Shown: in pieces, positions 4,791 to 45,900 of the stretch
How the letters are laid out: each line of letters starts with the position of its first letter
Position numbering within the stretch: position 1 is the first letter of the stretch
Origin: Gnetum montanum
Taxonomy: Eukaryota > Plantae > Gnetophyta
Length of the DNA: 64,000 bases
Assembly: GCA_015680685.1 (NCBI GenBank)
Contig: MNCI01001980.1
Coordinates: 265,375-329,374, forward strand
Direction: 5' to 3'
Made by a program: the position numbers and the translations under genes
Notes under the pieces: model-generated
Told to the model about the DNA's origin: nothing
The model's input: the letters and a program-made list of their open reading frames with translations, nothing else
Database searches by the model: none

Positions 4791-6369
4791 CTTTAAACAT
4801 AAATGCAAAACTAGTGGATAAAATAGAGATGAATGCTAAATATGGGACTTAGGTAATTAGTGCCACAACATACCTTTAAATAATAGTTGGATGCATGATC
4901 CCTTAAATCGCTTCCCTCTCAAACCCAAATCTAGTCTCTCATGAAGAGTCTGGATCAAACTAGCTTATAGGAAAGCCTCATACCACAAACTCTTCCTAGC
5001 CTTAACTATCTTATCAAAATAAAATAAACTAAAATAAAAAAAATAAAAAAAGGGTAAACCTTGTGGAATGCTAGTTCTCTTTAAGCATATAAGACAATAA
5101 TTCACATAAAAAAATAGGACAAACTTTGAATAGATATCCAAAACATAGAAGACTTAGCATACAATTGAAAATTTATGCCAACATACTTGGAGACTATGAT
5201 GTGAGTACTAGTAAGAATAAAGAGATTCTAGATATGACAAGGGTATAAGAGTAATGTAGTATTCACATTGAACCAAGTATAGGGATGATCCCTTCACAAA
5301 TAATCTAATTTCTTCCATTAAACCTCTTTGGTCTTGTTACTCCTGTCTACTACGATGTTCACAACCTTACATAGATCCCATGATAGATCCTGTCAAGAGC
5401 CAATGAGACTATTGGTAAGGGTAATGAGGTTTACATAAGTACATGAAAGTGTTCTATGTAGAACTTTAGAAAACATCTAGCACTAGGATGAGCCCACATT
5501 TATGTGGGAATAGAGTGAATGATCATCCACTATAGGTAGAGCTTTCACTCTCCTAGATCTCTTCGTAATCACAAGGGTTACATCACAGATCAAAAAATAC
5601 ATGGAATCAATTACTAGAAGCCTAGTATTGTTACAATTCCATCATTTCATGGAATAGTTAAATCAATAATAGGGATTTTATATTAATGAAGAGTAAGGGA
5701 CAAGTTCAAGAAACAATCAAACCTTGAATGTGTATTAAAAAATAAATGGTTATTAAGTTAATCTCAAGTTAAGTTAATCCCAAATATTGAGAAAAATCAT
5801 TAGGTAATTGAAAGTATATGATTCCAAAATGGAATAAATAAAGTTACATATTGAAAATGAAGAGCTAAATTTAACATTGTCCATATCAATTACTTAAGTT
5901 GATGGCAAAAATCAAGTTTTGGTTCATTGAATCTAAAAGCTAAATCTTCATAGAGTAGAGAGTTACAATAACATGATCATAAAATCAAGCTTTAATATTA
6001 AATATAAGAAAATTAATTTTTGCAATCTGATGAACATGAATCATGGTTAAATATCTAAAGCCTCTCTTGGAACAAGAGGAATTTTAGGATACTATTAGAA
6101 TTTATAGTTAGAGTTGTTTTAGGGTTCTACAAGAAGCTTAGTTGCCACACTAGCTTAAGAATAAAGGTTATACTCTGTTTAAACATAGCTCTAATGATAA
6201 AATCATAACACAAAGTATAATCAACAGCTACTTTTTTATTCAAAACATAAAAAGTAGTATTATGAAAAGGAGCTTAAGAAAAAGGCACATGCAAAGCTAA
6301 ATTTATAACCTAGCTATGCATAGTGAGGACTAGTAAAGTTAGATGTGAGAGCTTTACTCATGCAAGTTA

Positions 6370-7505
6370 ATTAGAACCATCTTGTAAAACTAAGATTTGG
6401 TTCTATGCATTTAGTTCTATAAAGAACTCAATCGCATGTAAGAAATGGACCGTCTAAAAATCCTGTAGAACCAAAACTTGATTCTAAGAAAGTTTATAAA
6501 TTTAGTTCTATAAGAAAATTTAATTCCAAGTAAGTAGCAATTAACTTTCTAACCTGTCAGCCAAAGTTATGAGAACCAAAATTGGTTCTATAAGGAGTGC
6601 TAGATTTCTTACTTTAAGTGTGCAAGGCCAAACTTACATTTGGTGCTTGTCCATGTTAGCTCATATGACACAAAAGCTCACAGAACCAAAAATGGTTCTA
6701 AAGAAAAGTGTTAGTTTGGTCATGCTAAGAAAACTCATCATCTAACACATTAATAGAGGTATTAAAACCAAAATTTAGCTCAATTTGGTTCCACGAAGAT
6801 GATAAGATTAATGTCTTTGCGCTATGGTGGGACATGACAGTTTCACATTTCAAAAAGAATTTAAGAAATATTTTATGCTTCATAAACTCCATATCAGTTC
6901 ATAGAGGTGAGGATCTAGTAGAACCAAAAGATAGTTTTAAAGAGAAGTGTTTTGATTTTATGAGCAAGCTCAAAGTTGCAGCAAGGCTCTTACACATTAA
7001 CTCAGCCATTCTGAAGTCAAAAAAGCATGTAGAAGAAAAATATGATTATAAAGAAAGGGTTTGATTTGGTTTTATAAGCCACATTAGCATCACAATGATG
7101 CACTTAAACATCCATTTATAAAATGAAGAAGCTAGAAAATAAGGAAAGATATGAAAAAATGGCCTATCACATCATCAGAAAGAATTTTAAGAAAAAGTTG
7201 GTTGAACAAATTTTTTTTTTACAGGAAGCTCACAAATGATTCTACTAAAGTGACATATTCGCACATAGCAATGCATGTGAATCCATTTCTAGTTGAAAAG
7301 CAAAATAGGAGAAACTTATTCTAAAAAGCTAGTAGAACCAAAAATGGTTCTAAAGCTTGATATCATACCAACATATCATGCAGAAAGTCATGTAGAAACT
7401 AAAATGGCCCTAAAAAGAAGCTTAAATTTAGTTCCACTTTCAAAGCTCTACAAGATGCTTATGCCACACTAGCGAAATTAATAGAACAAAAAAGTGGTTC
7501 TAAAG
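6370..7505. repeat. Cluster of palindromic TAGAACCA-N4/5-TGGTTCTA motifs (paralogue ~38415-39535)
   Basis: Perfect copy at 7333-7352; degenerate copies near 6385, 6466, 6571, 6681, 6765, 6919, 7393 and 7482. Confidence 0.75.
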
Positions 7506-7559
7506 GAAAGCTTAAGTTTGGTACTATAAGAAATTAAGGGGGCCCAATAGAAGTCAATA

Positions 7560-8600
7560 AAAGTATTACTAATCATACTTTAGCATGACTACTAGAAAAA
7601 GATTAACATTGATATAACTAGATCAATAATTGAAACAAGTCTACTTACGATTCAAACCTTAGATTGATGAAGTTATGTTGATTGTCATATCAACCTTTAA
7701 AGGATCATATATTTGATAATTACTTGAAGGATTTGAATTCAAGTGATTATAAAGGGTAGCTTTGAAAATTTAACAAATTATAGAATGCTTGAATAAGTGG
7801 CATTCATTAATTCCAACAACTTAGCCTAACATAAAATTAGGACTCTTTTTAAATAGGTAAAGCTTAATGAATGTAACATAAATAGGTAAATAGGTAAGAG
7901 AAAATTCACAAAGTCAAGAGAATAGATGAGACCATATATGATAAAGATAAGCTTTATTTTAGAGACAATATTAAGTGATATATTGATATCAATGTTAAAA
8001 AGGAATATATTATAGAGCCACACATTAATGAGGGTGAAGCATAATATATTAGTGAAAAAGTATTAAGTGGAAAATTTTAGCTACACCCAAAGATTGACAA
8101 AATTATTAAGCTCACACTACAAAAACGTGCTAAACATGGGGATACAAGAACATTATTTTGAAGGTAAATGAGCTTAGATTCCCACATAGAATTTTCATTT
8201 GAGCATTTAAAATCTATACAGGTCTGGAGATTAATTCTATTGGGAGATTATTATATTGAGATGTTAGAAGCATTAGTAAATGAAAAAAAAATTTCTTTCC
8301 CATGTAACACATGAATGATACATTATAATAGAGCATATCAGAAATTCATCAATAGGAAACATAACTGAGTTTGAGCTCATTTTTGATGGATATTTTCTTG
8401 AGTAAAGTTCATGAACTAGAGTGTATAGAACTCATTTTTGTAGACAACAAATACAAAAAGGTTTTTGCATTGAAGTTTGGCTTTTGGAAATTCAACAATG
8501 TTGGCCATCGAAAAGGAATGTCTCAAAGATATATGGAATAATGTGATCTTCTAGGTTTTTTTGACTAGAATTTATTCAGCTATGAACACTAGGAAAGCTC
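7560..8600 (-). pseudogene. Possible highly decayed Ty1/Copia integrase-region fragment
   Basis: Minus-strand translation of ~7600-7800 weakly resembles the Copia post-catalytic integrase segment (the A.YL.NR...PYEL...FGC...KFD.K region). Heavily disrupted. Confidence 0.3.
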
Positions 8601-8959
8601 ATCAACCTAATGATAAAGTTACTATATATTAAAGAGCTTCAAACAAGAAAGTAAATGAGGCTATGAAGTAGGAGGATAATTAAGAAAAAATATTTTTAAT
8701 AAAACCTACTGTTGAGCTCTATCAATGATTGTAGAGTAGAAATCACCCATTAGTCAAAGATTTTTTAAAGAAGCACATATCCATAATGAAGGTGAATTAT
8801 TTCTCCTAGAAGCTTGATAGTCCTAAAGAAGCTTTTCTTAATGCAAGGTTTCCTTTAGATGGAACTAGATTTTCAAGAGTTTGAGACACCAGGAAATCTA
8901 GAATTAAAGCAATTAAAGAAAAGGAGTAGTAAATCTAATCAAATCTAGTATGGTCATGG

Positions 8960-11395
8960 AAAGGAGAGCCCAATCAAATCCATGTATGTAGTGAATCCTT
9001 AATGGTGAAATATGTTATGACTGATGATTAATATAAATTCATTGAGCCAAAAAACATTGAAGTAGGAGTTAGCATTGTACATAAGATACACATCATGCAT
9101 CTAAATAAGCAAGAAAAGTAATATTGGAAAATGTGTTTTAATGATGCCAATAATTCAAAAGGGTTAAGAATAGATGTTTTATTAATATATCGAAAAGGTC
9201 ATAAAGAATTCAAAGTTTCTTAATTAGAGTTTTATTGCATAAACAATAAAGCTTCATACAAAGTTTTGTGTAGAGGTATTAGAATGGCTATCAACAAGGG
9301 AGCTAAGAAAATAAAAATCAAGGATGATTCAAAGCTTTTCTATGATTAGATTCAAGGAAAATGTGTCGTTAAAAGCTCATTCTTGAGATCATATAAACTA
9401 TTATTGTTAAAGATGCTAGAATATTTTGATGAATATAAGACTAAAAATGTTCCAAGAGAAGAAAATCAAATAGTCGATCTTGTAGTAGTAGCTTCAACCT
9501 TAGACATTGCTAAAATAAGAGGATAAAAAGGGAGAGTAATTGAGTTTGAGATAGAACCTTTAGTTCCTAATAATATAAATTGCCTCCAAGTATTTGAAGA
9601 TGATTAGCAAATAATAAATCTTTTGAGAAACATAGGTGAATTTAAAAATCAGGTATTTACTAAGAAAAAAGTAAAAACTAATATAATCCCAAAAAGAGTG
9701 CTTGAATTCAAAGAGAAGTTAAAGGAAAAATTGATTAAGGGTAAAGATATTCAAGATCCCAAAGATCAAACATATGAAATGTTAAACTTTAGATCTAAAG
9801 ATATGCTTTTACCTTCCATATTGGCATAAGGTTAAAACCTTAAGGGAAATCATAATTGACTAAATTATTAAAGGAACACTTAGAGAAATTTGTGTAGTCT
9901 TATGATTACTTATGAAATTTTATTGCTAATGTGATGATTCATAAAATTTTGCTAATCAAAGGATGCAAAATTATGAAAGAAAAGCTAAGTTTTAATCCTA
10001 GTTTGGAACCAGTCATGGATCTTGAAATTAAGATATTATTAAGAGCTAAAATAAGTTATCTTCTCTGTTATCCATTATTAATAGAAAATTTGATACTAGT
10101 TCAAAAAAAGAATGGGGACATTAGGTTGTATGTTATTTTAGAAACTTAAATAAAGCTTCACTTAAGGATAGGTACTAGCTTCCAAGGATCAATGAAATGC
10201 TAATAAAAGTATCAAGGTGTTAGCTATATTCATTCTTAGATGATTTCACATGATACAATCAATTTATAGGAGATAAGAATTATTGATACATAAACATATT
10301 CATAACAAAGTAAGAAATATTTGCATACAAAAGAATGCCCTTTGCTTTGTCTAATGGTTGAAAAATATTTCAACATGCCATGAATATTGCTTTCAAAGGC
10401 CTTCATTCAAGAATCAATGGTTGTATGCTTGAATGATATCATAGTATATGCAAAACATGAAAAGATCACATATTATACTTTCAGTAGATATTTGGCAAAT
10501 GTAAAAATTTTGGGAATTCTTTAAACCCTAAGAAATTCATTTTTGAGGTGAAATCATGAAGTTTGTTAGGCACCTAATTTGATAAAAAGGAAGAGCCATA
10601 GATTAATCTAGGATACTGGCAATTCAAAATATTATACATCCCATGAACAAAAAATCCTTACACTTATTCTTTAAAAAGATTAATTTTAGTAAGAAATTTG
10701 TTCTAGGATTTACAAGAATAACAAAGCCTTTATTATAAATGCTAAAGAAGGATGTGGAAGTAAGAAAAACTGAAGATTCTATCAAAGCCTTAGAGTTAAT
10801 CAAAGAAGCTATCATGGAAGCTCCATATTTGGTAAAACTAAAATTAAAAGAAGACTTGTGGTTATCCAAGGATTTTGTAGCTACATTATTAACAAAAAAG
10901 AATGATAAGAAAGAGAACCCAATTGAAGTTTTTGGTTATCAACTAAAATAGATTGAAAGAAAATATTCATAAATAGAAAAGAAAAATTACATTGTCATCA
11001 AGGATTTGTTACATTTCAAGTACTATTTGAAAAATTCAATTATTCATATTATGACTATAAAGCTAGCAACTAGGCAATTCTTATAAGCAAAAAAAGAAAA
11101 AAAAAAGAAAAAGAAATTGGGCTGAAAAGGATAAATTGGATATTAAGCTGCAACAATTTTAATCCACTTTAGAAATATGTATAACCTTAAAAACTATGGG
11201 TTTCTCTAGGATAATGGCTAAAGAAATTGAAGAGGTATTAATAACTTTAATTGAGATTAAAAATTAGTATGATGACATTGTTAGATTCCTTATTTAGCAA
11301 AAAGTTCCTAATGATTTAACTAAAAGTCAAAAAATTATTTTATTCAGAGGAAAGCCAAATATGTTTTGAGATACAGGATATTATACAGAAAAAAT
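8960..11395 (+). pseudogene. Decayed Tat-lineage Ty3/Gypsy pol: extra RNase H (aRH), RT, RNase H/connection, start of integrase (copy 1)
   Basis: 9124-9480: WKMCFNDANN...EFYCINNKASYKVL..GI.MA..KGAKKIKIKDDSKL...NVPREENQIVD (RNase HI/aRH pattern). 9950-10600 RT: VQKKNGDIRL, YNQF, YKRMPFALSN, CLNDIIV. 10640-11170 connection/RNase H: ALELIKEAIMEAPYL. Confidence 0.8.
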
Positions 11396-11449
11396 TTTAC
11401 AAACAAAAAGATCAATATTTATTCTACTTAATGCAATATATTTAGACCT

Positions 11450-12180
11450 TGATGGGACACGATATCACATGGGCTGCAATATTGCGTACGTGATATTGCG
11501 TTGTTCCCCATGATATCGCGTACACGATATCGCAGTGCACCGCCAAGTCTATAAATAAGAGGTGGCTCTCCCTTGTTTCTCATCTAGGCCTAGACCGTAG
11601 TGAAACTCTGGCAGTTTTACCTCTCCAGAGATAGATTAATTTCGATGTGCCCGCAGTAGGAACTCTAGAGTGAACGGATCTTTTTTCGAGCAGGACAATA
11701 AAGATGAACTTCTTGGATAAACCTTGCAGTGCATGGAATAGGCTAATTAGGATTTTATTTAATGTTATTTATTATTCGTTATTTAAATGCTTTATTAGTC
11801 ATTAAATCTCTCTCAACCCTTCTCTCCTAGTTAAGTGCCACAGTACGACCACTTTGAGCATGTGCGTTACGCTTCGTGATCCCAGCAACGACTAGCATTT
11901 GGTAACCAAGGTTGCATTGGTTTAGGGTGTGAACGGTAAGTGGGAACAGATGCTGACGCTAGGTTAATTAAGGCTTAGTTAGTTAGTTAGAGTTAGTTAA
12001 TTAGTCTCTTCACCCTTCACCTCAATAGCATAGGAGGTAAAATAGAAAAGACATAAAAATCATATACCTCAGACCTACTTAATCATACACTGTGACAACT
12101 ACAAGTAAGTCTGGGAAAAAAAAGAATGATTAACCTTAAGTGTTCCATAAGGCGTGTAGGCACTTAGTCTGTGGAGATCG
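11450..12180 (+). repeat. Family-A LTR, left arm (3' end and PBS lost at assembly Ns)
   Basis: Homologous to 30903-31938 and 56897-57690. GCGATATCGC-like repeats precede TATAAATA at 11550-11557. Confidence 0.88.
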
Positions 12181-12639
12181 CNTTAGAAATAGTCGGTAGT
12201 CTAAAACGCATAACCGAAATCCGCCAATTCCTCAACAATACTGAGTGGTATAAACTCATCCCGATGAGTACATACCAAATTTTACCTTTATCCTCCAGAT
12301 CGGTCAACCCCAAACATGCTCCTCCATGTTCTTGCATAGNAACAACACACTGAATAAAATAACAATGTCTTCTTCTTCAAACAAAAGCAATTCACCACCT
12401 AGGGATTATATTAGAAATAGTCGGTAGTCTAAAACGCATAACCGAAATTCACCAATTCCTCAACAATACTGAGTGGTATATACTCATCCCGATGAGTACA
12501 TACCAAATTTTACCTTTATCCTCCAGATCGGTCAACCCCAAACATGCTCCTCCATGTTCTTGCATAGATCCGCATGACATAGCTATATGTTGAGTACGTT
12601 ATAGGTGATTTTGACACAAGGGATTACCATCCCAAATTA

Positions 12640-14405
12640 GCACAATGTTTAAGGGACTCACGACAGGAGAGCCATCACACACTGTTGAAGGACAAAAGGG
12701 TCCTGCACGTCCTAAGTGAAATCAGAGATGGCGAACCACTTATAATGGGTTCTCCATCAGATGATGTTCCCCCCCTTCTAATGATGGTGAGCAGGTGGGG
12801 TATCAGAACTTACGCTCCACGATACACAACCCTAGTTCTGATCCTTGTGAATGGCAATTGTTCACTGAGGAAACAACAACACATAACAAGGACAGGCACT
12901 TAGATCGTCATCACGATTGGGGTCGTAGTCATAGAAGAGAAGGTAAGAAGCATTGTCATGGCGATGGTTCTCCTTCTTCTTCTCCTTCATCACATCACTC
13001 ACCCTCTCCTTCCACATCTGGGTGCACCGATCAAGAGCATAACAGAGAGGATAGAGGTAGGAAAAATGAGAGACCTCGATGAGAGAGTCAAGAGTGAGGA
13101 CAAGGGCATGAACGAAGGGAAAGTAGGGAACAACGTAGACACCATTGATGTCATGAAAGAGATGATCATGACAAGCCCCTACTTGCCACCTAAAGTATGC
13201 TAGATATAACGGAGGTAGTGAGAATACTGACAAGGCACCAAAAAGATAACTAGATCAAGTGCTTAAACATGAATAATATCCCATGCTTTGAGGGGGGATA
13301 CAACGCTGATCCGCAACATCATTTACAGGCATTCCATGATGCCTGTGGCTTGCAAAACATAGAGAACGAGTGGCAAAAACTAAAGTTGTTTCCTAGGACA
13401 CTCACAAAGGAAGTAGAGAGTTGGTATCGGTCCTTAGAACTGAAAACCATTAGGAGATGGAGTACAATGTTAGAGTTGTTTAATGATAAATATCAAATGT
13501 ACTCCAGAGTGTCTAACTTGTGTAAGCAGATCCAAGGATGGAAGCAAGGTAATCATGAACCCTTGGATGCTACCATGGGCTAATACTATGCATTGCTACA
13601 TCACTGCCCGAGCCATGATTGCACACAATGGGACCAACTTCGCCACATCGTAGATGGGCTAAGATATGAGACTAGGAGAACCCTTGGGAGATTATCAGAA
13701 CTTAGATCCCATGAAATTCATCACTTGTTGGAGTAAGTAGCCAAAGAAGAAGGGGAGCTACAAAAAAGAGAGAGCGTGAAAGAATACAACCGTGATCCTT
13801 CCCTTTGAAAGAAGGGAGTGAGATTTTGTGATGAAGAGGATGAGTCACCACTCGAAGAGTTGGTGAACAGAAAGACCTTGTTGATTCAAAAGCTAACAAC
13901 CAAAGTGTCGGCTAAGGTGGATCAATTGTGGGATTCCTTGGACTCTAGACTTGAAGCTGTCATGAAAATCGTAGAGGAGTCTAAGGTGGAACGAGGTAGT
14001 GACTCTAATAAGACAAAGCATAGAGATGGAGGCCATGCACGTAACAATGGTAAGGGGAAAATAACTATCTCCGATGAGGTTGTGGATTCAGACATAGACA
14101 ATGATGGTGGATGTGAGATCTACCAATACGACCATCCTAAGAGATGTTGTCCAATCATCTCACATCTACAAGAGTCTGGGGTGTATGCACTCAACTCGAG
14201 ACTTAATAGATGACAAACACCTCAAAGGTTACCTTATCCCCAAGTTAACCCAAGGTAGTTCCACCAATCGTTAACATAGTATCCAAGTGGAACTCCACCA
14301 CAACCCATCGGGCAACATCAGCAGTGGCAACACCCACAGTCATGGGGGATGGCACCGCCCAGAGAACAATACCCTAATCGATAACCTGATCCTTATGGCT
14401 ATTAC
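12640..14405 (+). pseudogene. Family-A gag, left arm (disrupted)
   Basis: ORF 13269-13583 IPCFEGGYNADPQHHLQAF...KLKLFPRTLTKEVESWYRSL (Retrotrans_gag pattern), plus further fragments. Start coordinate is approximate. Confidence 0.85.
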
Positions 14406-15593
14406 GTGCAACAGCTGGTTTCTCCAAGTGACTCTATGGGTCACACGACTCCCCAATGTCACTACCAAGTTCAGGAGTACTTTAGAAGTACTCCTTCTCC
14501 TATGGGAGACAGTCCACACTTGTACCATCCTCAAAATCGATCCGCCACTCTTCCGCCGATAGTTCCACTACCACTAGCTCCAACACTGCAAGGGGAACTC
14601 CCCACTCAACTGCAGCAACGCAATGCTACGAGAGCTATAAACATTCAACTCGCTACTAGTTCTAACAACCGCAAGAAAAGAAGACCCTGGTTCAGAACCA
14701 AAAGCCCAGAAAAGCTCTCACAACAACAAGCGGTTGAGTCTATGTACGCTCCTTCGGCAAACAAGACTTCGGAGCTCCCTTCGATCCAACAACAGAGCTA
14801 CATGCATACGATTATGTTAATGCATACCATTACTGATTGGATCAAGGTAGGCTACCTTCCCAGGAAACTCTCTGATCTTGGAAGCCCCTTAATCTATTTA
14901 CAAGTCACTAGGAATGAACCACAAAAGGCTCTTCTTGACTCAGGTTCTGGAGTCAACTTAATCTCACAAGAAATGTATCAAGCCTGGAACTTGCCCGAAC
15001 TCAAGAAGAGCAACATTCAACTAGAGCTTGCTAACCAATCCATCACCATTCCCTTGGGATTGCAGAAGGACATAGTTACCACTGTGTGTGGTTGGTCATA
15101 CCTAGTTGATTTCATGGTGATAGAAGTTAAGAGTGACAATGGGGGCTTCCCAATTATAATGGGAAGGCCATGGCTGAGTACAATAGATGCATACTTAGGG
15201 ATCTGCGATCTTTCCTTGGAGATATCTAAGGTAAAAATTTATGGAAAGATCGAGAAGAAGAAAGTTCCATGCATCACATACAGTGACTCAGAGGATGATG
15301 ACATAGAGGAATGCTCAACATCCCTTCCATGTAATCGATGTGCCCTAGAAACACAAATACAAAGGTGCCTATATGTAGAAACCACACAAGTAGTGGACAC
15401 CCCGTGGTTGACAACTAGTCAAAAGAGTAATCCAATATGCATGGAACAAACTGGGGGAACAACTCATGCTAACAATGAAGGCAGAGACACACTGGAATAC
15501 GAGCATCACCAACTTCCACCCCTTAACCTGAAAACATCAATTGGGAGAAGTTGGACACTTTTAAGAAATTCAAATAGGCGCTCATTACTTTAG
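14406..15593 (+). CDS. Open gag-tail plus retropepsin (aspartic protease) segment of the family-A element; pol deleted downstream
   Basis: 395-aa open frame with KLSDLGSP, ALLDSGSGVNLI, LELANQSI, DFMVI and IIMGRPWL, typical of Athila-type proteases. Confidence 0.8.
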   Translation: MQQLVSPSDSMGHTTPQCHYQVQEYFRSTPSPMGDSPHLYHPQNRSATLPPIVPLPLAPTLQGELPTQLQQRNATRAINIQLATSSNNRKKRRPWFRTKSPEKLSQQQAVESMYAPSANKTSELPSIQQQSYMHTIMLMHTITDWIKVGYLPRKLSDLGSPLIYLQVTRNEPQKALLDSGSGVNLISQEMYQAWNLPELKKSNIQLELANQSITIPLGLQKDIVTTVCGWSYLVDFMVIEVKSDNGGFPIIMGRPWLSTIDAYLGICDLSLEISKVKIYGKIEKKKVPCITYSDSEDDDIEECSTSLPCNRCALETQIQRCLYVETTQVVDTPWLTTSQKSNPICMEQTGGTTHANNEGRDTLEYEHHQLPPLNLKTSIGRSWTLLRNSNRRSLL

Positions 15594-15682
15594 ATCTCTC
15601 CCTTTCCATTTAGTCATGGGGGAGATGGCCACCTATGCTGATCATTGGAGGCCCTCAGTTCTTTTTGATTTTTGTTTTACAT

Positions 15683-17860
15683 GTGAAGCTCTGTTGTTGG
15701 ATGGAAGGGAGCTCTGAAGTTTTCTTTGTCAGAGGAGCATACATAGACTCAACCACTTGTTGTTGTGAGAGCTTGTCTGGGCTTTTCATTCTAAAGAAGG
15801 GTCTTCTTTTCTTGCAATTGTCAGAACCAGTGGCGGGTTGAATGTTTATAGCTCTCGTAGCGTTGTGTTGCTGCGGTTGAGTGGGGAGTTCCCCTTGCAT
15901 GGTACATGTATGGAGCTGGTGGTAGTGGAATTACTGGCGGAAGAGTGGCAGATAGATTTTGAGGATGGTACATGTATGGAATGTCTCCCATAGGAGAAGA
16001 GGTACTTCTAAAGTACTCCTGAACTTGGTAGTGACGTTGGGGAGTTGTGTGACCCATAGAGTCACTTGGAGAAACTGGCTGTTGCACGTAATAGCCATAA
16101 GGATCAGGTTGCTGGTAAGGGTATTATTGTCTGGGTGGTGGCATCCCCCATGACTGTGGGTGTTGCCATTGCTGATGTTGCCTGATGAGTTGTGGTGGAG
16201 TTCCACTTGGATAGTATGTTAACGGTTGGTGGAACTACCTCGGGTTACCTTGGGGATAAGGTAACCTTCGGGGTGTTTGTCGTCTGTTAAGTCTCAGGTT
16301 AAGTGCATACATCCCAAACTCTTGTAGATGTGAGATGATTGGACAACATCCCTTAGGATGGTCATATTGGCAGATCTCACATCCACCGTCATTGTCTATG
16401 TCTGAATCCACAACCTCATCGGAGATAGTTATTTTCCCCTTACCATTGTTAAGTGCATGGCTTGCATCTCTCCACTTTGTCTTATCAGAGTCACTACCTC
16501 GTTCCACCTTAGACTCCTCTATGATTTTCATGACAGCTTCAAGTCTAGAGTCTAAGGAATCCCACAATTGATCCACCTTAGCCAACACTTTGGTTGTTAG
16601 CTTTTGAATCGGCAAGGTTTTTCTGTTCACCAACTCTTTGAGTGGTGACTCATCCTCTTCATCGCAAAATCTCACTCCCTTCTTTCAAAGGGAAGGATCA
16701 CGGTTGTATTCTTCCATGCTCTCTCTTTTTTGTAGCTCCCCTTCTTCATTGGCTATTTGCTCCAACAAGTGATGAATTTCATGGATCTAAGTTTTGATAA
16801 TCTCCCTTGGGCATAAGTCCCAAGGGTTCTCCTAGTCTCATATCTTAGCCCATCTACGATGTGGTGAAGTTGATCCCGTTGTGCATAACCATGGCTTGGG
16901 CAGTGATGTAGCAATGCATAGTATTGGCCCATGGTAGCATCCAAGGGTTCATGATTACCTTGTTTCCATCCTTGGATCTGCTTACGCAAGTTAGACACTT
17001 TGGAGTATGTTTGATATCTATCATTAAACAACTCTAACATCATACTCCATCTCCTAATGGTTTCTGGTTCTAAGGATCGGTACGAACTCTCTGCTTCCTT
17101 TGTGAGTGTCCTAGTAAACAACTTCAGATTCTGCCACTTGTTCTCTACGTTTTGCAAGGCATAGGCATCATGGAATGCCTGTAAATGATGTTGTGGATCA
17201 ACGTTGTATCCCCCCTCAAAGCGTGGGATATTATTCATGTTTAAGCGCTTGATTCAGCTATCTTTTTCATGCCTTGTTGGTATTCTCACTACCTTCGTTA
17301 TATCTAGCATACTTCGGATGGAAATTAGGGGCTTGTCATGATCATCTCTTTCATGACGTCTATGGTGTCTACGTTGTTCCCTACTTTCCCTCCGTTCATG
17401 CCCTTGTCTTTGCTCTCGACTCTCTCGTCGAGGTTTCTCATTTTGCCTACCTCTATCCTCTCCGTTATGCTCCTGATGGTTGTGCCTAGATGTGGAAGAA
17501 AGGGTGAGTGATGTGATGAAGGAGAAGAAGAAGGAGAACCATCGCCATGACGATGCTTCTTACCTTCTCTTCTGTGACTACGGCCCCAATCGTGATGACG
17601 ATCTAAGTGCCCGTCCTTGTGATGTGTTGTTGTTCCCTCAATGAACAGTTGGCATTCATGGGGATCAGAACCAGGGTTGTGTATCATGGAGTGTAATTTC
17701 TAATACCCTACCTCCTCACCATGGTTAGGTGGAGGAACATCATCTAATGGAGAACCCGTTATAAGTGGTTCACCATCTTCGATTTCACTTAGGATATGCA
17801 GGACCCCTTTGTCCTTCAACAGTGTGTGATGGCTCTCCTACCGTGAGTCCTTTAAATGTT
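15683..17860 (-). pseudogene. Family-A gag, right (inverted) arm, truncated before the protease
   Basis: ORFs 16753-17238, 16235-16675 and 15655-15900 mirror 13269, 13818 and the start of 14406. Confidence 0.88.
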
Positions 17861-18319
17861 GTGTTGATGTGGGATGGTAATACCTTGTGTCAAAATCACC
17901 TATAACATACTCAACATATAGTTGTGTCATGTTGATCTGTGCAAGAGCACGGAGGAGCATGTTTGGGACTGACCGATGTGGAGGTAACACTATGTTACCT
18001 TGCAAGTCTCTCCATTGCAGCTATTCATCTTGATGGAGGATAAAGGTAAAATTTGGTATGTACTCATTGGGATGGGTATATACCACTAGGTATTGTTGAG
18101 GAATTGGTGGATTTCGATTATGTGTTTTAGATTGCCGACTGTTTCTAGTATAATCCCTAGGTGGTGAATTTCTTTTGTTTGAAGAAGAAGACATTGTTAT
18201 TTTATTCGGTGTGCTGTTTAACCATTATATAATTTTTCATTTAATTAACCCTAAGGTTGGTTTAAGCTTCCAACGATGGGAGTAATTTCCTATGTTCTAC
18301 TTAGCACACAAACACTTAG

Positions 18320-18336
18320 CCCCGGCAACGACGCCA
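18320..18336 (-). promoter_or_regulatory. Primer-binding site (tRNA-Asp type) of the right arm
   Basis: Minus strand TGGCGTCGTTGCCGGGG, 1 nt after the LTR end; Athila-type consensus is TGGCGCCGTTGCCGGGGA. Confidence 0.85.
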
Positions 18337-18337
18337 A

Positions 18338-19114
18338 TCATGAGTGACGAGGTACCCATACAATCAACCATACGAATACGAGCGTAGCACGCGCAATCCG
18401 GTCGAACTCCACAAACTAAGTGTCTACATGCCTTATGGAACACTTAAGGTTAATCATTCATTGTCTTCCTAGACTTACTTGTAGTTGTCACGGTGTATGG
18501 TTAAGTAAGTCTGAGGTATATGATTTTTATGTCTTTTTTGTTTTATCTCCTATGCTATTGAGGTGAAGGGTGAAGAGACTAATTAACCAACTCTAACTAA
18601 CTAACTAAACCTTAATTAACCTAGTGTCAGCATCCGTTCCCACTTACCGTTCACACCTTGAACCAATGCAACCTTGGTTACCAAATGCTAGTCGTTGCTG
18701 GGATCACCAAGCATAACGCACGTGCTCGAAGTGGTCGTACTGAGGCACTTAACTAGGAGAGAAGGGTTGAGAGAGATTTAATGACTAATAAAGCATTTAA
18801 ATAATGAATAATAAATAACAGTAAATAAAATCCTAATTAGCCTATTCCATGAACTGCAAGGTTTATCCAAGAAGTTCGTCTTTATTGCTGTACACAAACT
18901 TGTGTTCAGGTACAATGTCTGCTCGAATAAAGATCTGTTCACTTTGGAGTTCCTACTGCGGGCACATGGAAATTAATGTATCTCTGGATAGGTAAAACTG
19001 CTAGAGTTTTGCTATGGTCTAGGCCTAGATGAGAAACAAGAGAGAACTGCCTCTTATTTATAGACTTGGCGGTGCACCATGATATCACGGCGACTGCGAT
19101 ATCGCGTCCCATCA
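18338..19114 (-). repeat. Family-A LTR, right arm (inverted)
   Basis: Minus strand TGATGGGAC...CTCATGA, TATA box near 19055-19063, followed by the PBS. Confidence 0.9.
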
Positions 19115-19119
19115 GACCT

Positions 19120-22100
19120 CTTACAAGAAAAACTAACCTTCTCTTACAAGAAAAAGAACTTATAGGTACCAAATTAGTGAATGAAAGGCTAGTTAAAGGG
19201 AAAGAATATCTTCACATTATGCAAAGACAAGGAAGAAGTCCACAAAATAAAAGTAGACTAGGATTCTACCAACAAGAAGAAGCATCTACAAAAAATTCAT
19301 CCAAATAAGAGAATACTCGAAAGATTAAAGTGTCAACTTGCACTACATCAATACAAAGAGCAGCTCCAAGGTTTGATCACTTTATCCAAAATAAAAGGGT
19401 TAGATGTTACTATTGTAATGGAATTTGGCACAAGTAATGTGATTGTAACTTAAAATATTATCGCATGAACACCTAGTCAATCATAAGACTCCTTGGTCTT
19501 ACCAAAATGCACCTAGAAAGGAAGTCTTGCATGACAAGAAGAAACAAAGGACAAATCAAAAGGGCAAGGAGAATAAAAAGGTGTGGAGAATTAAATGAAA
19601 GGAAGAAAGTTAAAAAAATATTCATAAAAAATTTTATCTAATGGAGCTAAACATTAGAAATAAAAATTTATATGAAAGGAGAACTTCAAAAGAAGAACCT
19701 CATTCTCAAGCTCCTTAAACATCTTCATCTCCATCAACAAGCACGATAATTAGAGGTAAGCCTTCATCTCAATTAGAATATCTTTTAACACATCCATGGA
19801 AATTATCCCATGAACCTTTCCTTGCTAAGACATCTACCATTAGACGTCTACACAGCAAGATGGACATATATCCATAGATGTCTGCATTGCAAGTCTATCT
19901 AAGTTTTGAGTAGACACAACATAGATGTCTACTAGTCAAGATAGATGTCTATATTTTTGTAAAAAATCCATGATGGTCATAATTACATAAAGCCAACACT
20001 TCATTTTCCCCTCATGTTACAACATCCAAGCATAGATGATTGAGAGAAAATGACCAGGGCTTCCTCAGCAAAAAGATTTTGTTACTATCTGAGAGATTCT
20101 TTTACTTTTAGCAACGTCATTCGAAGTAACTTATGGCATTTTTCCAAGTGTTGAATTAGGTGTCCTTTATTTCTCTAAACTTTTGTATCCCTAAGATTCT
20201 CATTAGGGAATTTTATAAAAACATTGTAATTCAAATGCTAGTGTTGATGCTTTTACTTCCATTTTTGGGGAAATGTTGATTGAAGTCACCCCACAAGTTG
20301 TCAATGTCATCCTTGGCATTTTTAGTTCTAGTGTTCATAGGGTTACAATTAATTCCATGTCTAACATTTTCATGAATGGTGTAATACCTATTTCACACGA
20401 TGAATTTTGTGTTGCTTTGTTTAGGTAGTTTGTGTCTTTGGGTAGTGGGAAATTATTTAGGATTTAGATGGATTCAGATGCTTGCACCCTCTCTTTAATT
20501 ATTTTTTATAATATTACTGTAAAAGGGGGAAGTTATAGCTTCTTATTACTAGCCTAAGCCTTTGTTCTTTATTTTCTACTCATTGGGTAGCCACTAGACT
20601 TGGGCCATATCTTATGCAGAGACATGTTATGTCTCTTTGCTAGGGAGAGAGTTTATGAACATCCTCATCACATCAATTTGCTAATCCATTAGATAAGTGT
20701 TTTCATTCTTGATATGCCTTTACTCAAGGCTAAGAGAAGCCTTGGTGAGTATTTAGAGAAAATGAGCTCCACCCATGTTGAAGTTATAGAACTTAGAACC
20801 AGGCCTCATAAGTCAAGGAAGAAGGCAAATACATCACCTCCATAGGCATCTCCTCAGTTGAGAAGATCTAAATTAGTTAGTGGCTAGGTGAGATCCACTC
20901 TCAAGAAGTTTCTTAAGCCTTTTGCTCGTACTATTAGGATGATTGGCAAGAACCTCTATTACCTTCATAAGAGAATGGATGCAACTAGAGTACCTCTTCC
21001 TTCATATGGGAAAAAATTTAAGAATATCATCACTCCTCCCATATTAGATAGTGAGGAGGATCTTTTAGCTTCAACTAGGCACTTGGTGACTACTAGGCCA
21101 TCTTGGGCATATGACTCATGAAATGCATCTAATTTTTAGGGCACATGTTTAGGAAAAGATTCCTAATCCTATGTATCCTAGACCCAGTTCTCACCCTCAT
21201 GGTGATGCTCCACAGACATTTGAGAAACAAGCTATGGAGAGCATCTTCGAGACTTCATCTAAGTGAAGGCTAGTTGATCCAATCATGTATTAGATAAAGG
21301 GCACTTTCTCATCTTCTTAGTAGGCTCCATCTCATCCATCCACTTCATCCTAGTTTCAAGTGAAGCTTCATCCGAAGAGAGCTCATGTATACGTTCCATC
21401 GTTAGATGATGACGATGAGTAGCATGTCTCAAGCATCAATGCCAGCACCAGTAGTGATGATGAAGAGGAGGAGACATACCAACCCACTTGTGTACTAGCT
21501 TCCTCTAATGATGAGTTTAATGATGTCACTGAGATTAGTGGTTAGGTTCCCTTGTTGGTTCCTCCTTTTGAGTGATGTCTAAAAAGGGGAGAATTTTGTA
21601 GATTGTATGGATAGTTATATATAAATATGGACGTGTATGGACATCAATAGGATGTTATGATAGTATGTCATGATCTTTTGACCTTTGTATGTGTTAGTGG
21701 ATAGCTAATGATAGTTTTATCATTGTTGATCATGTTTATGTATATGGGAAACTATGTTTTTGGTATCATGATATATTATGTGTGGATTGTATGGACAGTT
21801 ATCTATGGATATGGACTTGTATGGCTAATGACAATATGTTATGATCTTTTGAACTTTGTATGTGATGGTGGACAACATATGACAGTTTTATTATTGTTAA
21901 TAATTTTTATGTATATGGATAGTTGTGTTTTTAGTAGCATGATATATTATGAGATAGGTTTGCATTTGCAAAGTTTATGAAGAATTCTTGGTGTTATCAT
22001 TTTTTTTCTTTTACCCACTAGGTTGAACCTTTTGTCCCTATTCTAGTTTTACCCTTTGTTGCCATTGGAATATAAGTCTTAAATGCTTTTATTATTTATC

Positions 22101-23254
22101 ATTTAATTTATATGCTATGAATGGTACTAATCCATTTTCTTAAGTTTTGGACACCACCAAAAAGGAGGAGATTGTTGACCTTTTGGCATGTCAAAACCTT
22201 AAAGAAAAGGAAATTGTAGATTGTATGTATGTAATGATAATTTTGTAGGGCCATGACCTAGAACTTCACATGAAGATTTGAGAGTTCAAAAAACTAGATC
22301 TATTTTAAGTTGTCAAAATGAAGACTACATGGTGAAGATGAGAGCATGAATGAAAATGAAGTTTACAAGCCAATTGAATGTGTTTTGAAGATTTCCATGA
22401 TGTCAACTTGACAAGGGAATGCCTCAAATTGCAAAGTGCAAAATTGAAGTAGACATCTACAAAAACAGCAGATGTCTATCTTTAAAAATAGATGTCTATT
22501 CTTCTAGGTAGATGTCTCTCCTACATTAGGAACTATCTCATGTAGACATCTCAACTTTGAAGTAGATGTCTATACTAGTCATTTGATAGTTGTTGCATGA
22601 ATTCCAAGGAGTTTTTAGAAACTTTGAGGCTGTAAGACAATGTAAAAATATTGGAAATTGGACAAGCACTATTCATAGAAAGATTCATCATTGTTTACTC
22701 AAAGTGAATTTTCCTTTACTCTTCATTGTAACATCATTTGCTTGTTTGTATTAAGCTTCAAATACAAGGATCTATAAATTTAGTTACACTCTTCCCTTGT
22801 TTCTTTTTCTTTCTTTCTTGTAGCCCTATGTGGTTGATGTACTTCTTGTAAGAAGACATTTTTGTTGAGCTTGTCGGGATCCTATGGATTGTAAGGTTTT
22901 GTGGTGTCAAATTACTCTAGTGTGAAGCTCAATTTTGTAAAGGTTATGGGATCCTCTAAATGACATTTTTGAGCTTGTTGAGGCCTTCTAAGGTTGAGTG
23001 GTTTCACCATGATGAAAAACTCTTGAGTAAAGCTTAAAACTTGTATAGGGTATGGTGCCCTTCAAAACCACTTTTTGAAGAAACAAAGTATGGAAATGTG
23101 CTCATATTCTACACTCTAAGTGTGGATGTACCCAAGTTAAGAAACCATATAAAATTTTTGTGTGTTTTTTTGGCTTTAGCATTTAAATTAGGAAACTTAT
23201 TCAACCCCCCTTCTAAGTTCTCGATCCATAGAAACCGCTTCACTATTCCCAACA
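19120..23254 (+). mobile_element. SIRE/Maximus-like Copia remnant: gag C-terminus, env-like ORF remnant, double PPT, 3' LTR (copy 1; begins ~11400, split by the insertion)
   Basis: gag LHIMQRQGRSPQNKSRLGF plus a CYYCNGI knuckle and KVWRIK. env-like motif ILIREFYKN near 20195-20222. PPTs aaaaagggggaga (~21581) and aaaaaggaggaga (22159-22171). LTR TGTTG at 22173, 'tattcaacccccc' near its 3' end, ends CAACA. Confidence 0.75.
22173..23254 (+). repeat. SIRE-like 3' LTR (end could be 23259)
   Basis: TGTTG...CAACA termini directly after the PPT; GTAGACATCTAC-type repeated motifs at 22449-22572. Confidence 0.75.
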
Positions 23255-25772
23255 CAACAAATGTATGCTCCTGTGAAAATGAATCCTAGCACCTAGGAAG
23301 TTATGATGTCCATCCTTAAACAAGAATTCCTTGAGATATTTGGGAATGCCACAACTTTCTTAATGTGTCTAGAGGAAGATGAGGGGACAACTATACTAGT
23401 GATAAAGCACCATGGACAAGAGACATGGATGGAAGTGATGGTAGATAGGATGGTTGAGCTCCTAAACACTCTTGAGACACCAATACCAGACATTGCTTCC
23501 ATGGCAGATATTCAAGTGTCCATAGGAGCAAGGAGTGGTCAGCTCAGTGTAGCCCAACATAAGGAAGTGTATGATCAACTAGTGGAAACTAGGCAACCAT
23601 TTCTAGAGATCTTTGATCTCCCAAATAAAATTATAGTAACCCAATTAGGACTACTAGAGACTAAGAGCAAACTGATCATTGCCAATGCTTAGCTACAGGA
23701 AGCCACTATTGAAAACCAACAATTTATTGCCAAAGTTGTAGAGTTTTGAGCCCATCTATCCAACCCTACCATTCTCAACTTGAATCTTAATAGAGATGAA
23801 GCTTTCTAGTAGCTTCAATAAAGACTCAAAGAGGTTGAGAATGCGAAGAAGAATATAGTATTTGACACCTTCTTATTAAAAGCCTTAACATTCAACACTG
23901 ATAAGGATTTGACATAAGTCTTCAAAGAGAAATTGGTGCTCATCAAGAAATGTCGAGCAACAAAAGGACCAAATAATCAAATTCATTCAAAAATAGTAGG
24001 AGCTACTAGCTAAGGTTAGCAGAGAATCAAAATCTCTCCATGGAGGAAGTTCGAGCACTTTGCCAAAAAGATAGCCATTGAGGTAGCTACCTAGAAGAAT
24101 GAGGCCCTGAAATTTGAATAAGTCAAAAATCATTATAGGGACCAAGTTTGGCTCCTCAAAGAGATGAACAAGAGGGAGATTTAGTTAGCCTAGGTGAAGA
24201 TGAACAAGACCCTCTACCAACTCCAGCAAAGAGGCAATGTAGTAGCCAAATTTTGATGGCTTAAATGCATGTAACAAAGCTAAGATCTGCCTAGAGGAGT
24301 TGCGGATTGAGGTGATGATTGAATACACAGAGCTTGCCAACCTTTGATACACAAACTTAACTATGCTGACTATAGGGAGGCCAAGGATAGAGTTGAAAAA
24401 GCATGTGGCCAATTCATACCTCTTATACGAGGGAAAATTCAAGCACCATAAAGAGACAAAACAATAGTTGGAGGTAGCCAATATGGAGCTTGAAGTTATT
24501 TGAAGCCAATTCACTAATCAATGATCACTTGCTAAAAACCTAGCTAGGAGAATGAACGACTACCACGAGCTGTAGAACCTTATCAAGATGTTTGATATCG
24601 AACAAAAATAATTTGCGGCATGGTTAGTCAATGCTAAGGAGTTGTTCCCTATAATGTTGTGTGTATGGGACATTCTCATACCAACCCATATTGGTGAATT
24701 CACATGGATTATGTACAACCCATGAGATAAGGAAGAGAAGATGAAAGCAACAACAACAGGACAACCTTGACTACCTCCAACACCATAAGCGTTAAAGCCT
24801 GGTAAAGGAAATTTAGCATCCTAGGAGCCTCCACCTCCTAGCACTATTTGGATTTGACCTCATCTTCTATAATATATGAGGAATTCTGCCATCATCTTTG
24901 TAAGGGTGTCCAATGTTGTTGTCATGAACACCAATTTTTGTAATTTTGTACAATTCAACACTCAGAGTTAGTTAGTCAAAGTTAGTCAATTAATAATTTC
25001 ATATTTTTCCAAATTTGTAAGAAGCTCAATCCTACCTTTATTCACTCGAGGTTGAGTTTTCACTAAATCATGGGGGTATGATGAAGTATAGTCAACTGGT
25101 TGCATCAATGGGCATGCGTCAATGCAGCCCCATTGAGACATGGTTACATGCATCAACACAGATGTAAGTCAAGCATATATAAATGTACATACCCACCATA
25201 TTTATGGCATGTTAAGTTAATAGAGTAGAAAAGCTCTTGTAATTTTCTTTCTAAGTGCCAATTGTATGAGCTAAAGTAATTCTACCTAAACACATTGATG
25301 TGAACAGTAATAAAGAAGAGATTATTCACATTCATTGTAGCACTTGGAATAGATTAATATTTCTTACTTGCACTTTGTTCTTTATGCACTTTACATTCTT
25401 GTCTTAAGCAATTAATACATTTAATAGTGAATACATAAGTATGACCACTTCAAGCATACTATTTAATGCTTGGTAATCCAAGCAGTGGTCATTTGATACA
25501 CCTAGTAATTGTTACTTGGTAACCTAGTAGTGTTAATACAAGTTTAGGATGTGTATTGAAAGTATGTACTGATACTTATGTTAGGATAGTTAGCCTTTGA
25601 ATTGTTATATAGCTAGAATAGTTAATTATCAACCATTTATCTTTTCACCAATACTTAGGCTAAAATATATACAAAAAATATAAACATAAATACATATAAT
25701 ATGTCTTAACTCATACTTAACCATACATAAGAGCCTACATGAGTGAGAGTTAGGAAGACAATAGTCAGATGG
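23255..25772 (+). mobile_element. 3' part of a second Athila-related element (Y): decayed 3' ORF, PPT-like tcatgggggta, truncated LTR from 25079
   Basis: Same pre-LTR signature as family A (cttgaggaNgagtttt...tcatgggggta TGATG; compare 25043-25083, 49031-49070 and 30869-30907). TATA near 25176. LTR tail 'taggaagacaat' resembles family A. Confidence 0.65.
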
Positions 25773-34709: not shown

Positions 34710-34731
34710 TAATAATAATAATAATAATAAA
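34710..34731. repeat. (AAT)n microsatellite
   Basis: About 7 AAT units. Confidence 0.9.
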
Positions 34732-42968: not shown

Positions 42969-45900
42969 ACAAGATCAATATTTATCTTTACTTAATGCAA
43001 CATATTTAGACCTCTTACAAGACAACTCAAACCTAAGTGCTGAGAATGAAAAACTAACCTTGTCTTCCAAGTAGATGGGAAAAGAACTTCGAGGTACCAA
43101 ACTAGTAAATGAAAGACTAGTCAAAGGGAAAGAATCCCTTCACATCATGCTGGGACAAGGAAGAAGTCCACATGATAAAAGTGGACTAGGATGCTACCAA
43201 TAAGAATAAACATATACGCAAAATTCATCCAAACAATACTCCAAAGATTAAAGTGTCAACAAGCACTATGTCCAAACAAAGAGTAGCTCCAAGGTTTGAT
43301 CACTTTATCCAAAATAAAAGGGTTATATGTTACAATTGTAATAGAATTTGACATAACCAATGGGGTGGTAACTTAAAATATTATCACATGACTACTTGGT
43401 CATATCATAAGACTTCTTGCTCTTACCAAAATGCACCTAGAGAGGAAGTCTTGCAGGACAAGAAGAAATGAAGGACAAATCAAAAGGCTAAGGAGAACAA
43501 AAAGGTGTGGAGAATTAAATGAAAGGATGAAAGTGAAAAAACCTTGATACAAAATTTTCTAAAAGGGAGATAAACATTATAAATAGAAAAAATTTATATG
43601 AAAGGAAGAACTTCAAAATAAGAACCTCATTCTCAAGCTTCCTAGAAATCTTCATCTCCATCAACAAGCAAGGTAATTAGAGGTAAGCCTTCATCTTAGT
43701 TAGAATTTCTTTTAACACATCCATGGTAGTTATCCCATGAACCTTTCCTTGCTATGACATCTACCATTAGACATCTATACAATAGGATAGACATCTACAT
43801 CAGGAGTTAGATGTTTATTTGAGTTTTGAGTAGACACAACATACACATCTACTAGTCAAGATAGATGTCTATATTTTTGTAAAACACCTTGATGTACATA
43901 AAGCCAACACTTCTTTTTTACACATACAACCATCAATGACTAAGAGAAAACAACCAAGGATTCCTCAACACTGATGATTTGTGCATCTTCTTGCAGATTG
44001 ATGGCTCATAAAAAGATTGTGATGTCCAAGGATCTACCTAGAAAGAATAAGAAGTTGAAGGAAGCATCTGCTAGTGCTACAAATTCTTATACTCAATTTT
44101 TCTCCACCAATGCTCAACATAGATATGTGGTAACTCGTTCTGTTACTATCTAAGGGGTTCTTTTACTTTTAGCAATGTCGTCCAAAGGAACTTATGGCAT
44201 TTTTTCAAGTGTTGAATTGGGTGTCCTTTATTTCTCTAAACTTTTATATCCCTAAGATTACCATCACGGAATTTTATTACAACAATATAATTTTAATGCT
44301 AGTGTTGATGCTTTTACTTCCACTATTGGGGAAATGTTGATTGAAGTCACCCCACAAGTTATTAATGTCATCCTTGGCATTTTTAGCTCTGATGTTCACA
44401 GGGTTACAATTCATTCCATGTCTAACATTTTCATGAATGGTGTAATCCTAGTTTCCCATGATGAATTTTGTAATGCTTTGTTTGGGTAGTCTATGTCTTT
44501 GCATAGTGGAAAAGTTTTTAGGAGTCAGATGGATTTAGATGCTTCCACCCTATCTCTCATTATTTTGTATAATATTATTGTAAAAGGGGGATGTTATAGC
44601 TTTTTATTGCTAGCCCAAGCCTTTGTACTTTATTTTCTACTCATCGAGTAGCTAGTAGATTTAGGCCATATCCTATGAAGAGACATGTTAGGTCTCTTTA
44701 CTAGGAAGAGAGTTTATTGACATCCTCATCACATCAGTTTGTTGATCCATTAGAAAAGTGTTCCCATTCTTGATATGCCTTTTCTAAAAGGTAAGAGAAT
44801 CCTTGGTGAGTATTTAGAGAAAATGAGCTCCACCCATGTTGATGCTACAAAACTTAGCACCATGCATCATAAGTTAAGGAAGAATAGATCTACATCACCT
44901 CCTTAGGTCTCTCCTCAGTTGAGAAGATCTAAATCAGTTAGTGGTCAGATGAGATCCACTCTCAAGAAGTTGCTTAAGCCTTTTTCTCATACTATTAGGA
45001 TGATTGGCAAGAACCTCTATTACCTTCGTAAGAGAATGGATGCAACTAGAGTACCTCTTCCTTTGTATGGGTAGCAATTTGAGAAGATCATCACTCCTCT
45101 CATATTAGACAACGAGGATGACTTTCAAGCTCCAACTAGGCACTCAACAACTATTGGTCCATCTTGGGCATATGACTTAGGAAATGTGTATGATTATGAG
45201 GAGCTTAACACACTACCTGCACATGTCTAGGGGGAGATTCCTAATCCTACGTAGCTTAGACCCAGTTCTCACCCTCATGGTGATGCCCCATAGACATTTG
45301 AGTAACAAGCTATGAAGAGAATATTTGAGAATTCATCTTAGGCAAGGATAGCTAATCCAATAATGTATTAGAGGAAGGGCACTTCCTCATCCTTTTAATA
45401 GGCTCCATCTCATCCACCTGCTTCATCCTAGTTTCAAGTGAAGCTTTGTCCCAAGAGAGCTCATGTAGATGTTCCATCATCAAATGATGACAATGAGGAG
45501 ACATACTAGCCCTCTCATGTAGTAGCTTCCTTTGATGATGAGTTTGATGGTGTCATTGAGGTCAATGATTAGGTTCCCTTGTTTGTCCCTCCTTTTGAGT
45601 GATGTCCAAAAAGGTGGAGAATTTTTTGAATTTTATGGATAGTTATATATGGATATGGACTTGTATGGACAATGATAGTATGTTATGACCTTTTGGCCTT
45701 TGTATGTGATGGTGGACATTTTATGACAATTTTATTGTTGTTGATCATATTTATGTATATGGACAACTAATTTTTTGGTATCATGATATATTATGTGTGG
45801 ATTTTATGGACAATTGTATATGGATATGGACTTGTATGGACAACGATAGTATAGTGGACAACATATGATGGTTTTATTGTTGTTGATCATGTTTATGTAT

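Follow-up and report, generated by a model that had tools for sequence, protein, structure and literature searches.

We analysed a 64,000-nucleotide (nt) stretch of the Gnetum montanum (Gnetophyta) genome (GenBank assembly GCA_015680685.1, contig MNCI01001980.1, positions 265,375 to 329,374 of the forward strand), referred to here as the window and numbered from its first letter. Positions 11450 to 19114 hold an insert of 7665 bp made of two 3'-truncated copies of a gag-protease Ty3/gypsy retrotransposon, arranged tail to tail with their 5' long terminal repeats (LTRs) facing outward (Table 1). The left copy retains 4.23 kb and the right copy 3.43 kb, giving a 3.35-kb inverted repeat with ~0.88 kb of unpaired sequence at its centre.

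Probable insertion as a unit at one target site

Both outer termini of the unit are intact to the terminal TG/CA of the LTR. On the left, the LTR start TGATGGGAC comes directly after GACCT, with its first base at 11450 (ATTTA-GACCT-TGATGGGACACGATATC, 11445-11449/11450). On the right, the reverse complement of the LTR start, GTCCCATCA, terminates at 19114 and is followed by a second GACCT at 19115-19119 (GATATCGCGTCCCATCA-GACCT-CTTACAAG, 19114/19115-19119). The left flank, one GACCT and the right flank, placed end to end, align continuously to a paralogous segment of the window (42830-43241) across the single GACCT at 43009-43013. Because the flanks are contiguous around one GACCT in this paralogue, the target-site duplication (TSD) is no chance match between two 5-mers. 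Taken with the uninterrupted empty site, the direct duplication of 5 bp places the entire 7665-bp unit in one staggered cut. An earlier note on this DNA, drawn from the sequence alone, had claimed a GACCT TSD with outward U3 ends on both sides and an empty site at 43009-43013; the terminal sequences bear out the first claim and the alignment of the joined flanks the second.

The filled and empty paralogues also differ by a 27-bp indel (19127 versus 43021-43047), 7 bp to the right of the insertion site. This indel has no effect on the inference of the TSD or of the empty site.

Anatomy of the two arms

The paired arms cover 11450-14802 on the left and 19114-15682 on the right. A repeat finder returned ten inverted-repeat pairs, 88-94% complementary, that tile 11526-14802 against 19086-15684. 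When 11450-15683 was aligned to reverse-complemented 15684-19114 with MAFFT, 2924 matches and 373 mismatches were counted (88.7% identity), along with a handful of indels of 48, 29, 55, 15 and 7 bp. The arms had at first been taken as alike; they are ~11% different.

The extent of the LTR in the unit was fixed from two other copies in the window (30903-31938 and 56897-57690). In the right arm the LTR measures ~777 bp (19114-18338) and is followed by the primer-binding site (PBS, 18336-18320), so that part of what the earlier note had called leader is LTR. Both outer LTRs carry a TATA box, at 11550 and 19062, giving convergent LTR promoters. The ~0.9-kb protease-containing loop described in the same note is present: 14803-15681 carries LLDSGSG and IIMGRPWL, the hallmarks of an aspartic protease of retroviral type, within the open reading frame (ORF) 14406-15593.

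In the left arm, the LTR end and the PBS are hidden by a 157-nt segment (12183-12339) with a single N at each edge. This segment is a 98% copy of 12411-12567 and, by comparison with a relative and with the right arm, replaces a homologous 184 bp comprising the LTR end, the PBS and ~118 nt more. It is probably a gap-filling artefact of the assembly.

Table 1. Features of the inverted unit and of its empty target site (window coordinates).
Feature	Position	Strand	Description	Basis
Left TSD copy	11445..11449		GACCT	Sequence and empty-site alignment
Left arm, 5' LTR	11450..12181	+	First bases TGATGGG; TATAAATA at 11550; LTR end absent from assembly	Start aligns with LTR starts at 30903 and 56897
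N-bounded segment	12182..12340	+	157 nt	Repeat finding; comparison with right arm and relative
Left arm, leader and gag	12341..14802	+	Retrotrans_gag (ORF 13269-13583); paired with right arm; many in-frame stops	
Unpaired loop	14803..15681	+	Left copy alone; aspartic protease DSG at 14937-14945; runs into T-rich tract	
Centre join	15680..15681		Dinucleotide CA common to left-copy end and right-copy inner end (2-nt microhomology)	
Right arm, gag and leader	15682..18319	-	Retrotrans_gag (ORF 16753-17238, E 7.5e-08); truncated at equivalent of left 14803	
Right copy, PBS	18320..18336	-	TGGCGTCGTTGCCGGGG	
Right arm, 5' LTR	18338..19114	-	Complete, 777 bp; TATAAATA at 19062-19055; U3 start abuts TSD	
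Right TSD copy	19115..19119		GACCT	Sequence and empty-site alignment
Paralogous empty site	43009..43013		Single GACCT, flanks contiguous	Flank alignment

Family identity and relatives in the window

Both arms match Retrotrans_gag (PF03732), the right arm above the curated cut-off (E 7.5e-08), and the loop gives a weak match to Pfam gag-asp_proteas (E 0.0019, below the gathering score). The Pfam scan covered 8 of the 14 ORFs of at least 80 amino acids in the unit, among which only gag and protease were matched. A relative that starts at 56897 shows the order gag-protease-RVT_1, with RVT_1 at 61400-61738; it is ~75% identical, decayed, and runs off the window at 64000. Its LTR of 794 bp (56897-57690) is followed by TTGGCGCCATTGCTGGGGA, with a PBS at 57692-57708 that has the same motif as the right copy. 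The right-copy motif is presumably of the tRNA-Asp type used by Athila/Tat-like elements.

A further LTR of the family (30903-31938) has AGTCATGGGGG-TA before it and unrelated sequence after it, and is therefore a 3' or solo LTR. As the earlier note had said of the other LTRs in the window, those at 30903 and 56897 start with TGATGAG; they finish with CTCATCA (30903-31938 and 56897-57690), which makes a perfect 7-bp terminal inverted repeat.

The assignment to Ty3/gypsy follows the order gag then protease in the unit and the RVT_1 domain in the relative from 56897 onward, the unit itself being without reverse transcriptase (RT). An LTR with TG...CA ends and an adjoining PBS is present in the right arm, and the 5-bp TSD expected of integrase is found as GACCT on both sides and once at the empty site. 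The LTRs do not form the usual direct-orientation pair, with U3 on the left and U5 on the right: they are inverted, with a U3 start at each outer end.

Positions 28107-31938 hold a 5'-truncated relative of the same subfamily, consisting of gag-protease (28107-29202), a T-rich tract, a 221-N gap, the polypurine tract (PPT) AGTCATGGGGG at 30890-30900 and the LTR at 30903-31938, followed by GGTTC. From 15575 onward, the left copy and the copy at 28107-29202 no longer follow the relative that carries RT and instead enter a non-coding, T-rich tract. This shared departure suggests, from the sequence comparison, that the subfamily is a gag-protease-only, non-autonomous derivative of about 7 kb.

With up to one mismatch allowed, the window contains nine occurrences of the PPT-like 11-mer AGTCATGGGGG, against 0.81 expected, and eight of the nine are inside elements of this family (the positions include 14338, 15612, 16145 on the minus strand, 29133, 30296, 30890, 59899 and 63892). 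Some are in gag and some after protease. Those within elements may be internal plus-strand priming sites.

Neutral, symmetric divergence of the arms

The arms have diverged evenly and to the same degree on both sides. Their Kimura two-parameter (K2P) distance is 0.097 overall; by region, the LTR gives 0.097, the leader 0.079 and 0.114, and gag 0.096. Arm differences counted in the gag frame are distributed 56/50/56 over the three codon positions, compared with 132/98/217 between the left arm and the distant copy from 56897 onward; the arm pattern gives p = 0.80 versus a uniform distribution and p = 0.001 versus the selected pattern 132/98/217. With the distant copy as outgroup, the left arm has 120 derived changes and the right arm 117, of which 53-57% are C>T or G>A. 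The arms carry 12 (left) and 5 (right) in-frame stops, both counted in the left arm's frame, and their indels differ. The differences are mildly uneven along the arms (chi-square p = 0.016), with no clear mosaic.

The Nei-Gojobori dN/dS between the arms is 0.58. We dropped this value as a sign of selection, since under a transition bias this strong (222 transitions and 59 transversions) the method overestimates dS; the counts by codon position give a cleaner test.

Because divergence is even by region and by codon position and the derived changes are symmetric, the arm differences look neutral and fit two initially near-identical copies decaying together in place, although the outgroups in the window are too distant to show if these differences are confined to this locus. 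With a rate of 1.3e-8 substitutions per site per year, which is an assumption, the arms would date to about 3.7 million years ago. In transversions, the arms differ by 1.9% and the flanking paralogues by 3.3-5.6%; the lower value for the arms makes the order of duplication first and insertion second self-consistent.

Proposed integration through two U3 ends

The TSD proven by the empty site and the termini complete to the last base argue for an integrase origin of the unit. The pair probably entered as one unit through two identical (U3) ends, as a rare by-product of integration. The specific account that we favour, tentatively and with confidence somewhat short of an even chance, is that a single integrase event used the two U3 ends of two truncated cDNAs that were joined by end-joining. 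Two 3'-truncated double-stranded cDNAs of the same gag-protease Ty3/gypsy subfamily would each have supplied an intact 5'-LTR terminus (TG...). Integrase would have paired the two U3 termini and joined them to the target 5 bp apart, creating the GACCT duplication, and host end-joining would have closed the broken inner ends at CA, before or after strand transfer. The product would have been the 3.35-kb inverted repeat with its 0.88-kb unpaired centre, both arms of which would then have decayed neutrally in place.

The use of two like ends is compatible with the termini of the family, since its LTRs have a perfect 7-bp terminal inverted repeat and the U3 and U5 ends therefore show integrase the same terminal bases. 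Ty1 integrase, tested in vitro with short donors that bear U3 ends only, achieves concerted full-site integration, and it prefers U3 over U5 (PMC8487063). The anatomy on which the earlier interpretation rested, with two outward U3 ends, a TSD and an empty site, stands, and integrase-type insertion of a 7.67-kb unit is the simplest reading of it; the main rival, two successive insertions, had been overlooked.

The centre join and competing origins

At the centre, gag/protease sequence is joined to gag at CA (15680-15681), and neither GACCT nor a 3' LTR is present there. The left copy matches the copy at 28 kb and a loose end of public contigs as far as TTTTACA at 15681, after which canonical copies go on with CAT. 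The right copy, read as its reverse complement, matches the 14760-14802 region of the left copy from 15680. The inner ends of the two copies are thus at unequal positions, and this inequality and the 2-nt microhomology are as expected of joined broken ends; we infer one event, two molecules and an end-joined centre. A comparison of the window with itself found no second copy of the centre join.

The same final structure could have been reached by double insertion into the same 5 bp in opposite orientation. This would give GACCT-element-GACCT-element-GACCT, from which ~6 kb of the centre, with the 3' parts and the middle GACCT, would then be lost by illegitimate recombination. We regard this as rather unlikely, though it is the rival that deserves most attention. 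Long palindromes are unstable and prone to losing their centre, and a later deletion could have removed the GACCT and the 3' LTRs there; illegitimate deletion typically leaves a join of the kind seen here, with 2 nt of microhomology. Members of the family do insert into one another: in a contig of the public run X5, an inverted LTR terminus (19115) is joined to gag position 14143 of the same family, so that family members nest inside each other elsewhere in that genome. Double insertions are also documented, including inverted LTR-retrotransposon tandems with the target motif at the junction, as for Rover in Drosophila (PMC5932611). Against this, the scheme needs three events, one of them a second insertion into those exact 5 bp with the required orientation, at a site where half of the target context had become LTR sequence after the first insertion. 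No remnant of a middle duplication or of any 3' LTR is seen. Exact reinsertion at the same site within one family should be rare by chance: with n copies in a genome of size G, the expected number of correctly oriented exact re-hits is ~n squared/2G, which falls far short of one except where n approaches 1e5 in a genome of a few gigabases, an order-of-magnitude figure in which the numbers, copy number included, are assumed.

The position of the join also bears on a snap-back origin, in which plus-strand synthesis on one cDNA came to a halt in the T-rich tract at 15681, the 3' end paired with its own strand at the TG near 14797 and was extended as far as the U3 start, so that a full duplex with two U3 ends was integrated. 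The join has the form that this predicts: after TTTTACA comes, in reverse complement, the sequence that precedes the TG near 14797. A PPT-like AGTCATGGGGG is found at 15612-15622, and the left copy stops 59 nt past it in the T-rich tract, a plausible pause site. Arms identical at birth would, in addition, fit the neutral, symmetric divergence. The fold-back would, however, have been primed by a pairing of only 2 nt, and a hairpin has one duplex end and one 3'-OH, while a 5-bp TSD needs two duplex ends; a further round of second-strand synthesis, itself unexplained, would seem to be required. The fold-back cDNA proposed in the earlier note does not easily explain the TSD for this reason, and we consider it improbable. 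The nearness of the PPT-like motif to the join is weak evidence, given its nine occurrences in the window, and a central PPT as the cause of the left-copy endpoint was downgraded on that ground to a weak lead.

The earlier note had also offered an undescribed mobile fold-back family, for which the TSD and the intact termini are the only points in favour. Canonical LTR reverse transcription needs a sense-oriented 3' R region or 3' LTR. A transcript started in either LTR of the unit would be without a sense-oriented 3' R for first-strand transfer. The arms, moreover, are decayed, with different stops and indels, and the window holds no second centre join. A self-copying family of this kind is very hard to credit, and the suggestion was not borne out.

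Three other routes to the structure were rejected. Chromosomal fold-back or a template switch during replication, of the kind in origin-dependent inverted-repeat amplification (ODIRA-like), would give AGGTC and an inverted left flank; what is seen is a direct GACCT and the paralogue's right flank. Autointegration yields circles that duplicate element sequence, not host sequence. Homologous recombination or inversion within one normal element cannot place a U3 start precisely at the right TSD, the LTRs sharing only the 7-bp terminal inverted repeat.

Reliability of the assembly

We assessed read support for positions 13500-19400 with Logan contigs of 60-130 nt from four runs (four organism labels, three studies). 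Contigs that match one arm without mismatch are found where the arms differ at 10-12 sites (X1 over 14462-14585, X6 over 14472-14569). They come from runs of two differently labelled organisms, and they indicate that the arm sequences are locally real, although the runs cannot be assigned to this very locus.

These contigs argue against an assembly artefact, in which the T-rich centre would have been joined wrongly or the middle collapsed, leaving an incorrect interior, and other content would lie between the outer LTRs. An error of this kind gains some weight from the single-N gaps at 12182 and 12340, which enclose a wrongly filled segment, and from the extreme abundance of the family in the public runs. 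Among the listed contigs none crosses 15681, and the X8 record 28 contig tracks the left copy to 15681 and then leaves the window sequence as canonical copies do. The outer junctions, on the other hand, are in N-free stretches (1-12181 and 12341-29711) with kilobases of flank collinear with the paralogue, so the outward U3 ends and the TSD stand whatever the interior. With only 2 nt common to the two sides of the centre, a k-mer graph would need spanning reads to connect them. On balance we judge an artefact in the interior to be distinctly improbable.

Two specific errors were dismissed. A palindromic long-read chimera is excluded by the 11% substitution difference and the unequal lengths of the arms. 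A mis-oriented contig between the Ns and 19114 does not agree with the absence of any N in 12341-29711, and flipping the piece gives no sensible element.

Several points weigh against a single U3-U3 event. No trace sets it apart from two insertions with a later loss of the centre. Neutral divergence would also be expected if two decaying non-autonomous lineages supplied the arms. The centre join is in a T-rich tract, where assemblies are error-prone, the left arm holds the N-bounded artefact, and no listed Logan contig (60-130 nt) bridges 15681 or 19114, which neither supports nor refutes the centre join. The case is a single old locus, and full-text searches of a literature library yielded no in vivo U3-U3 insertion with a correct TSD, which is no proof of absence.

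Comparison with known systems

The unit shares with canonical Ty3/gypsy insertions a TG LTR, a TATA box, a PBS beside the LTR, gag (PF03732), a DSG protease, a 5-bp TSD and intact termini. It differs in that its LTRs are inverted, both being 5' LTRs with leader and gag inward, and in that it is without a 3' LTR, a PPT-LTR junction, RT or integrase.

A biochemical parallel is two-donor integration in vitro by retroviral or Ty1 integrase (PMC8487063), where U3 and U3 ends from separate molecules are joined with the normal stagger. The donors there are short oligonucleotides, whereas the event proposed here would have taken place in the germ line, with kilobase cDNAs and inner ends repaired by the host. 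Inverted tandems of transposable elements formed by double insertion (McGurk and Barbash 2018, PMC5932611) likewise have two inverted copies of one LTR retrotransposon at one target site; unlike the present unit, which is without the middle motif and both 3' halves, they keep the middle target motif and whole elements.

DIRS and Ngaro elements are also retroelements bounded by inverted repeats, but they have a tyrosine recombinase and an internal complementary region and leave no TSD. The unit has a 5-bp TSD, and its arms are LTR-leader-gag of an integrase-type family. The TSD proven against the empty site rules out a DIRS-type element, and no tyrosine recombinase was found among the ORFs scanned with Pfam, a search that did not extend to shorter or broken remnants.

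Mu killer of maize is an inverted partial duplication of MuDR that makes a hairpin RNA. The unit resembles it as an inverted and rearranged partial element copy, the transcript of which would form a long double-stranded RNA directed at the element's family. Mu killer differs in being derived from a DNA transposon and in that its silencing activity has been demonstrated.

Significance of the proposed like-end integration

We regard the unit as an aberrant product of known machinery, well documented by an internal empty-site control. If it arose by a single U3-U3 event, the pairing of like ends by integrase, known in the test tube, happens in vivo in the germ line, and its product is heritable. 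When new, that product would have carried convergent promoters on a long inverted repeat without mismatches, and it could therefore have given rise to double-stranded RNA directed at its own family and made the chromosome fragile at that point. If the double insertion is true, the locus is an ordinary decayed nest.

A bolder and improbable extension is that like-end integration (U3-U3 or U5-U5) is recurrent in this repeat-rich genome. Each birth would then create a perfect kilobase-scale hairpin locus with convergent LTR promoters that could trigger RNA silencing of its own family, in effect a 'killer' locus made by integrase. The frequency, arm lengths and centre joins of such insertions, if they recur, would show how often integration complexes hold more than one cDNA.

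Other repeats in the window

In the self-comparison, a unit of 27 kb or more appears twice in the window, at 1-27100 and 31979-51121, ~32 kb apart. K2P between the two copies is uneven, ranging from 0.09 to 0.18 from block to block, and they contain no ORF of at least 150 amino acids. Since the large unit starts at the first base of the window, it may be longer. Downstream of its second copy are inverted repeats of 79-87% identity, 52177-52925 paired with 54496-55194, and in the same range of identity 26188-26369 and 50215-50436 are each paired with 55437-55647.

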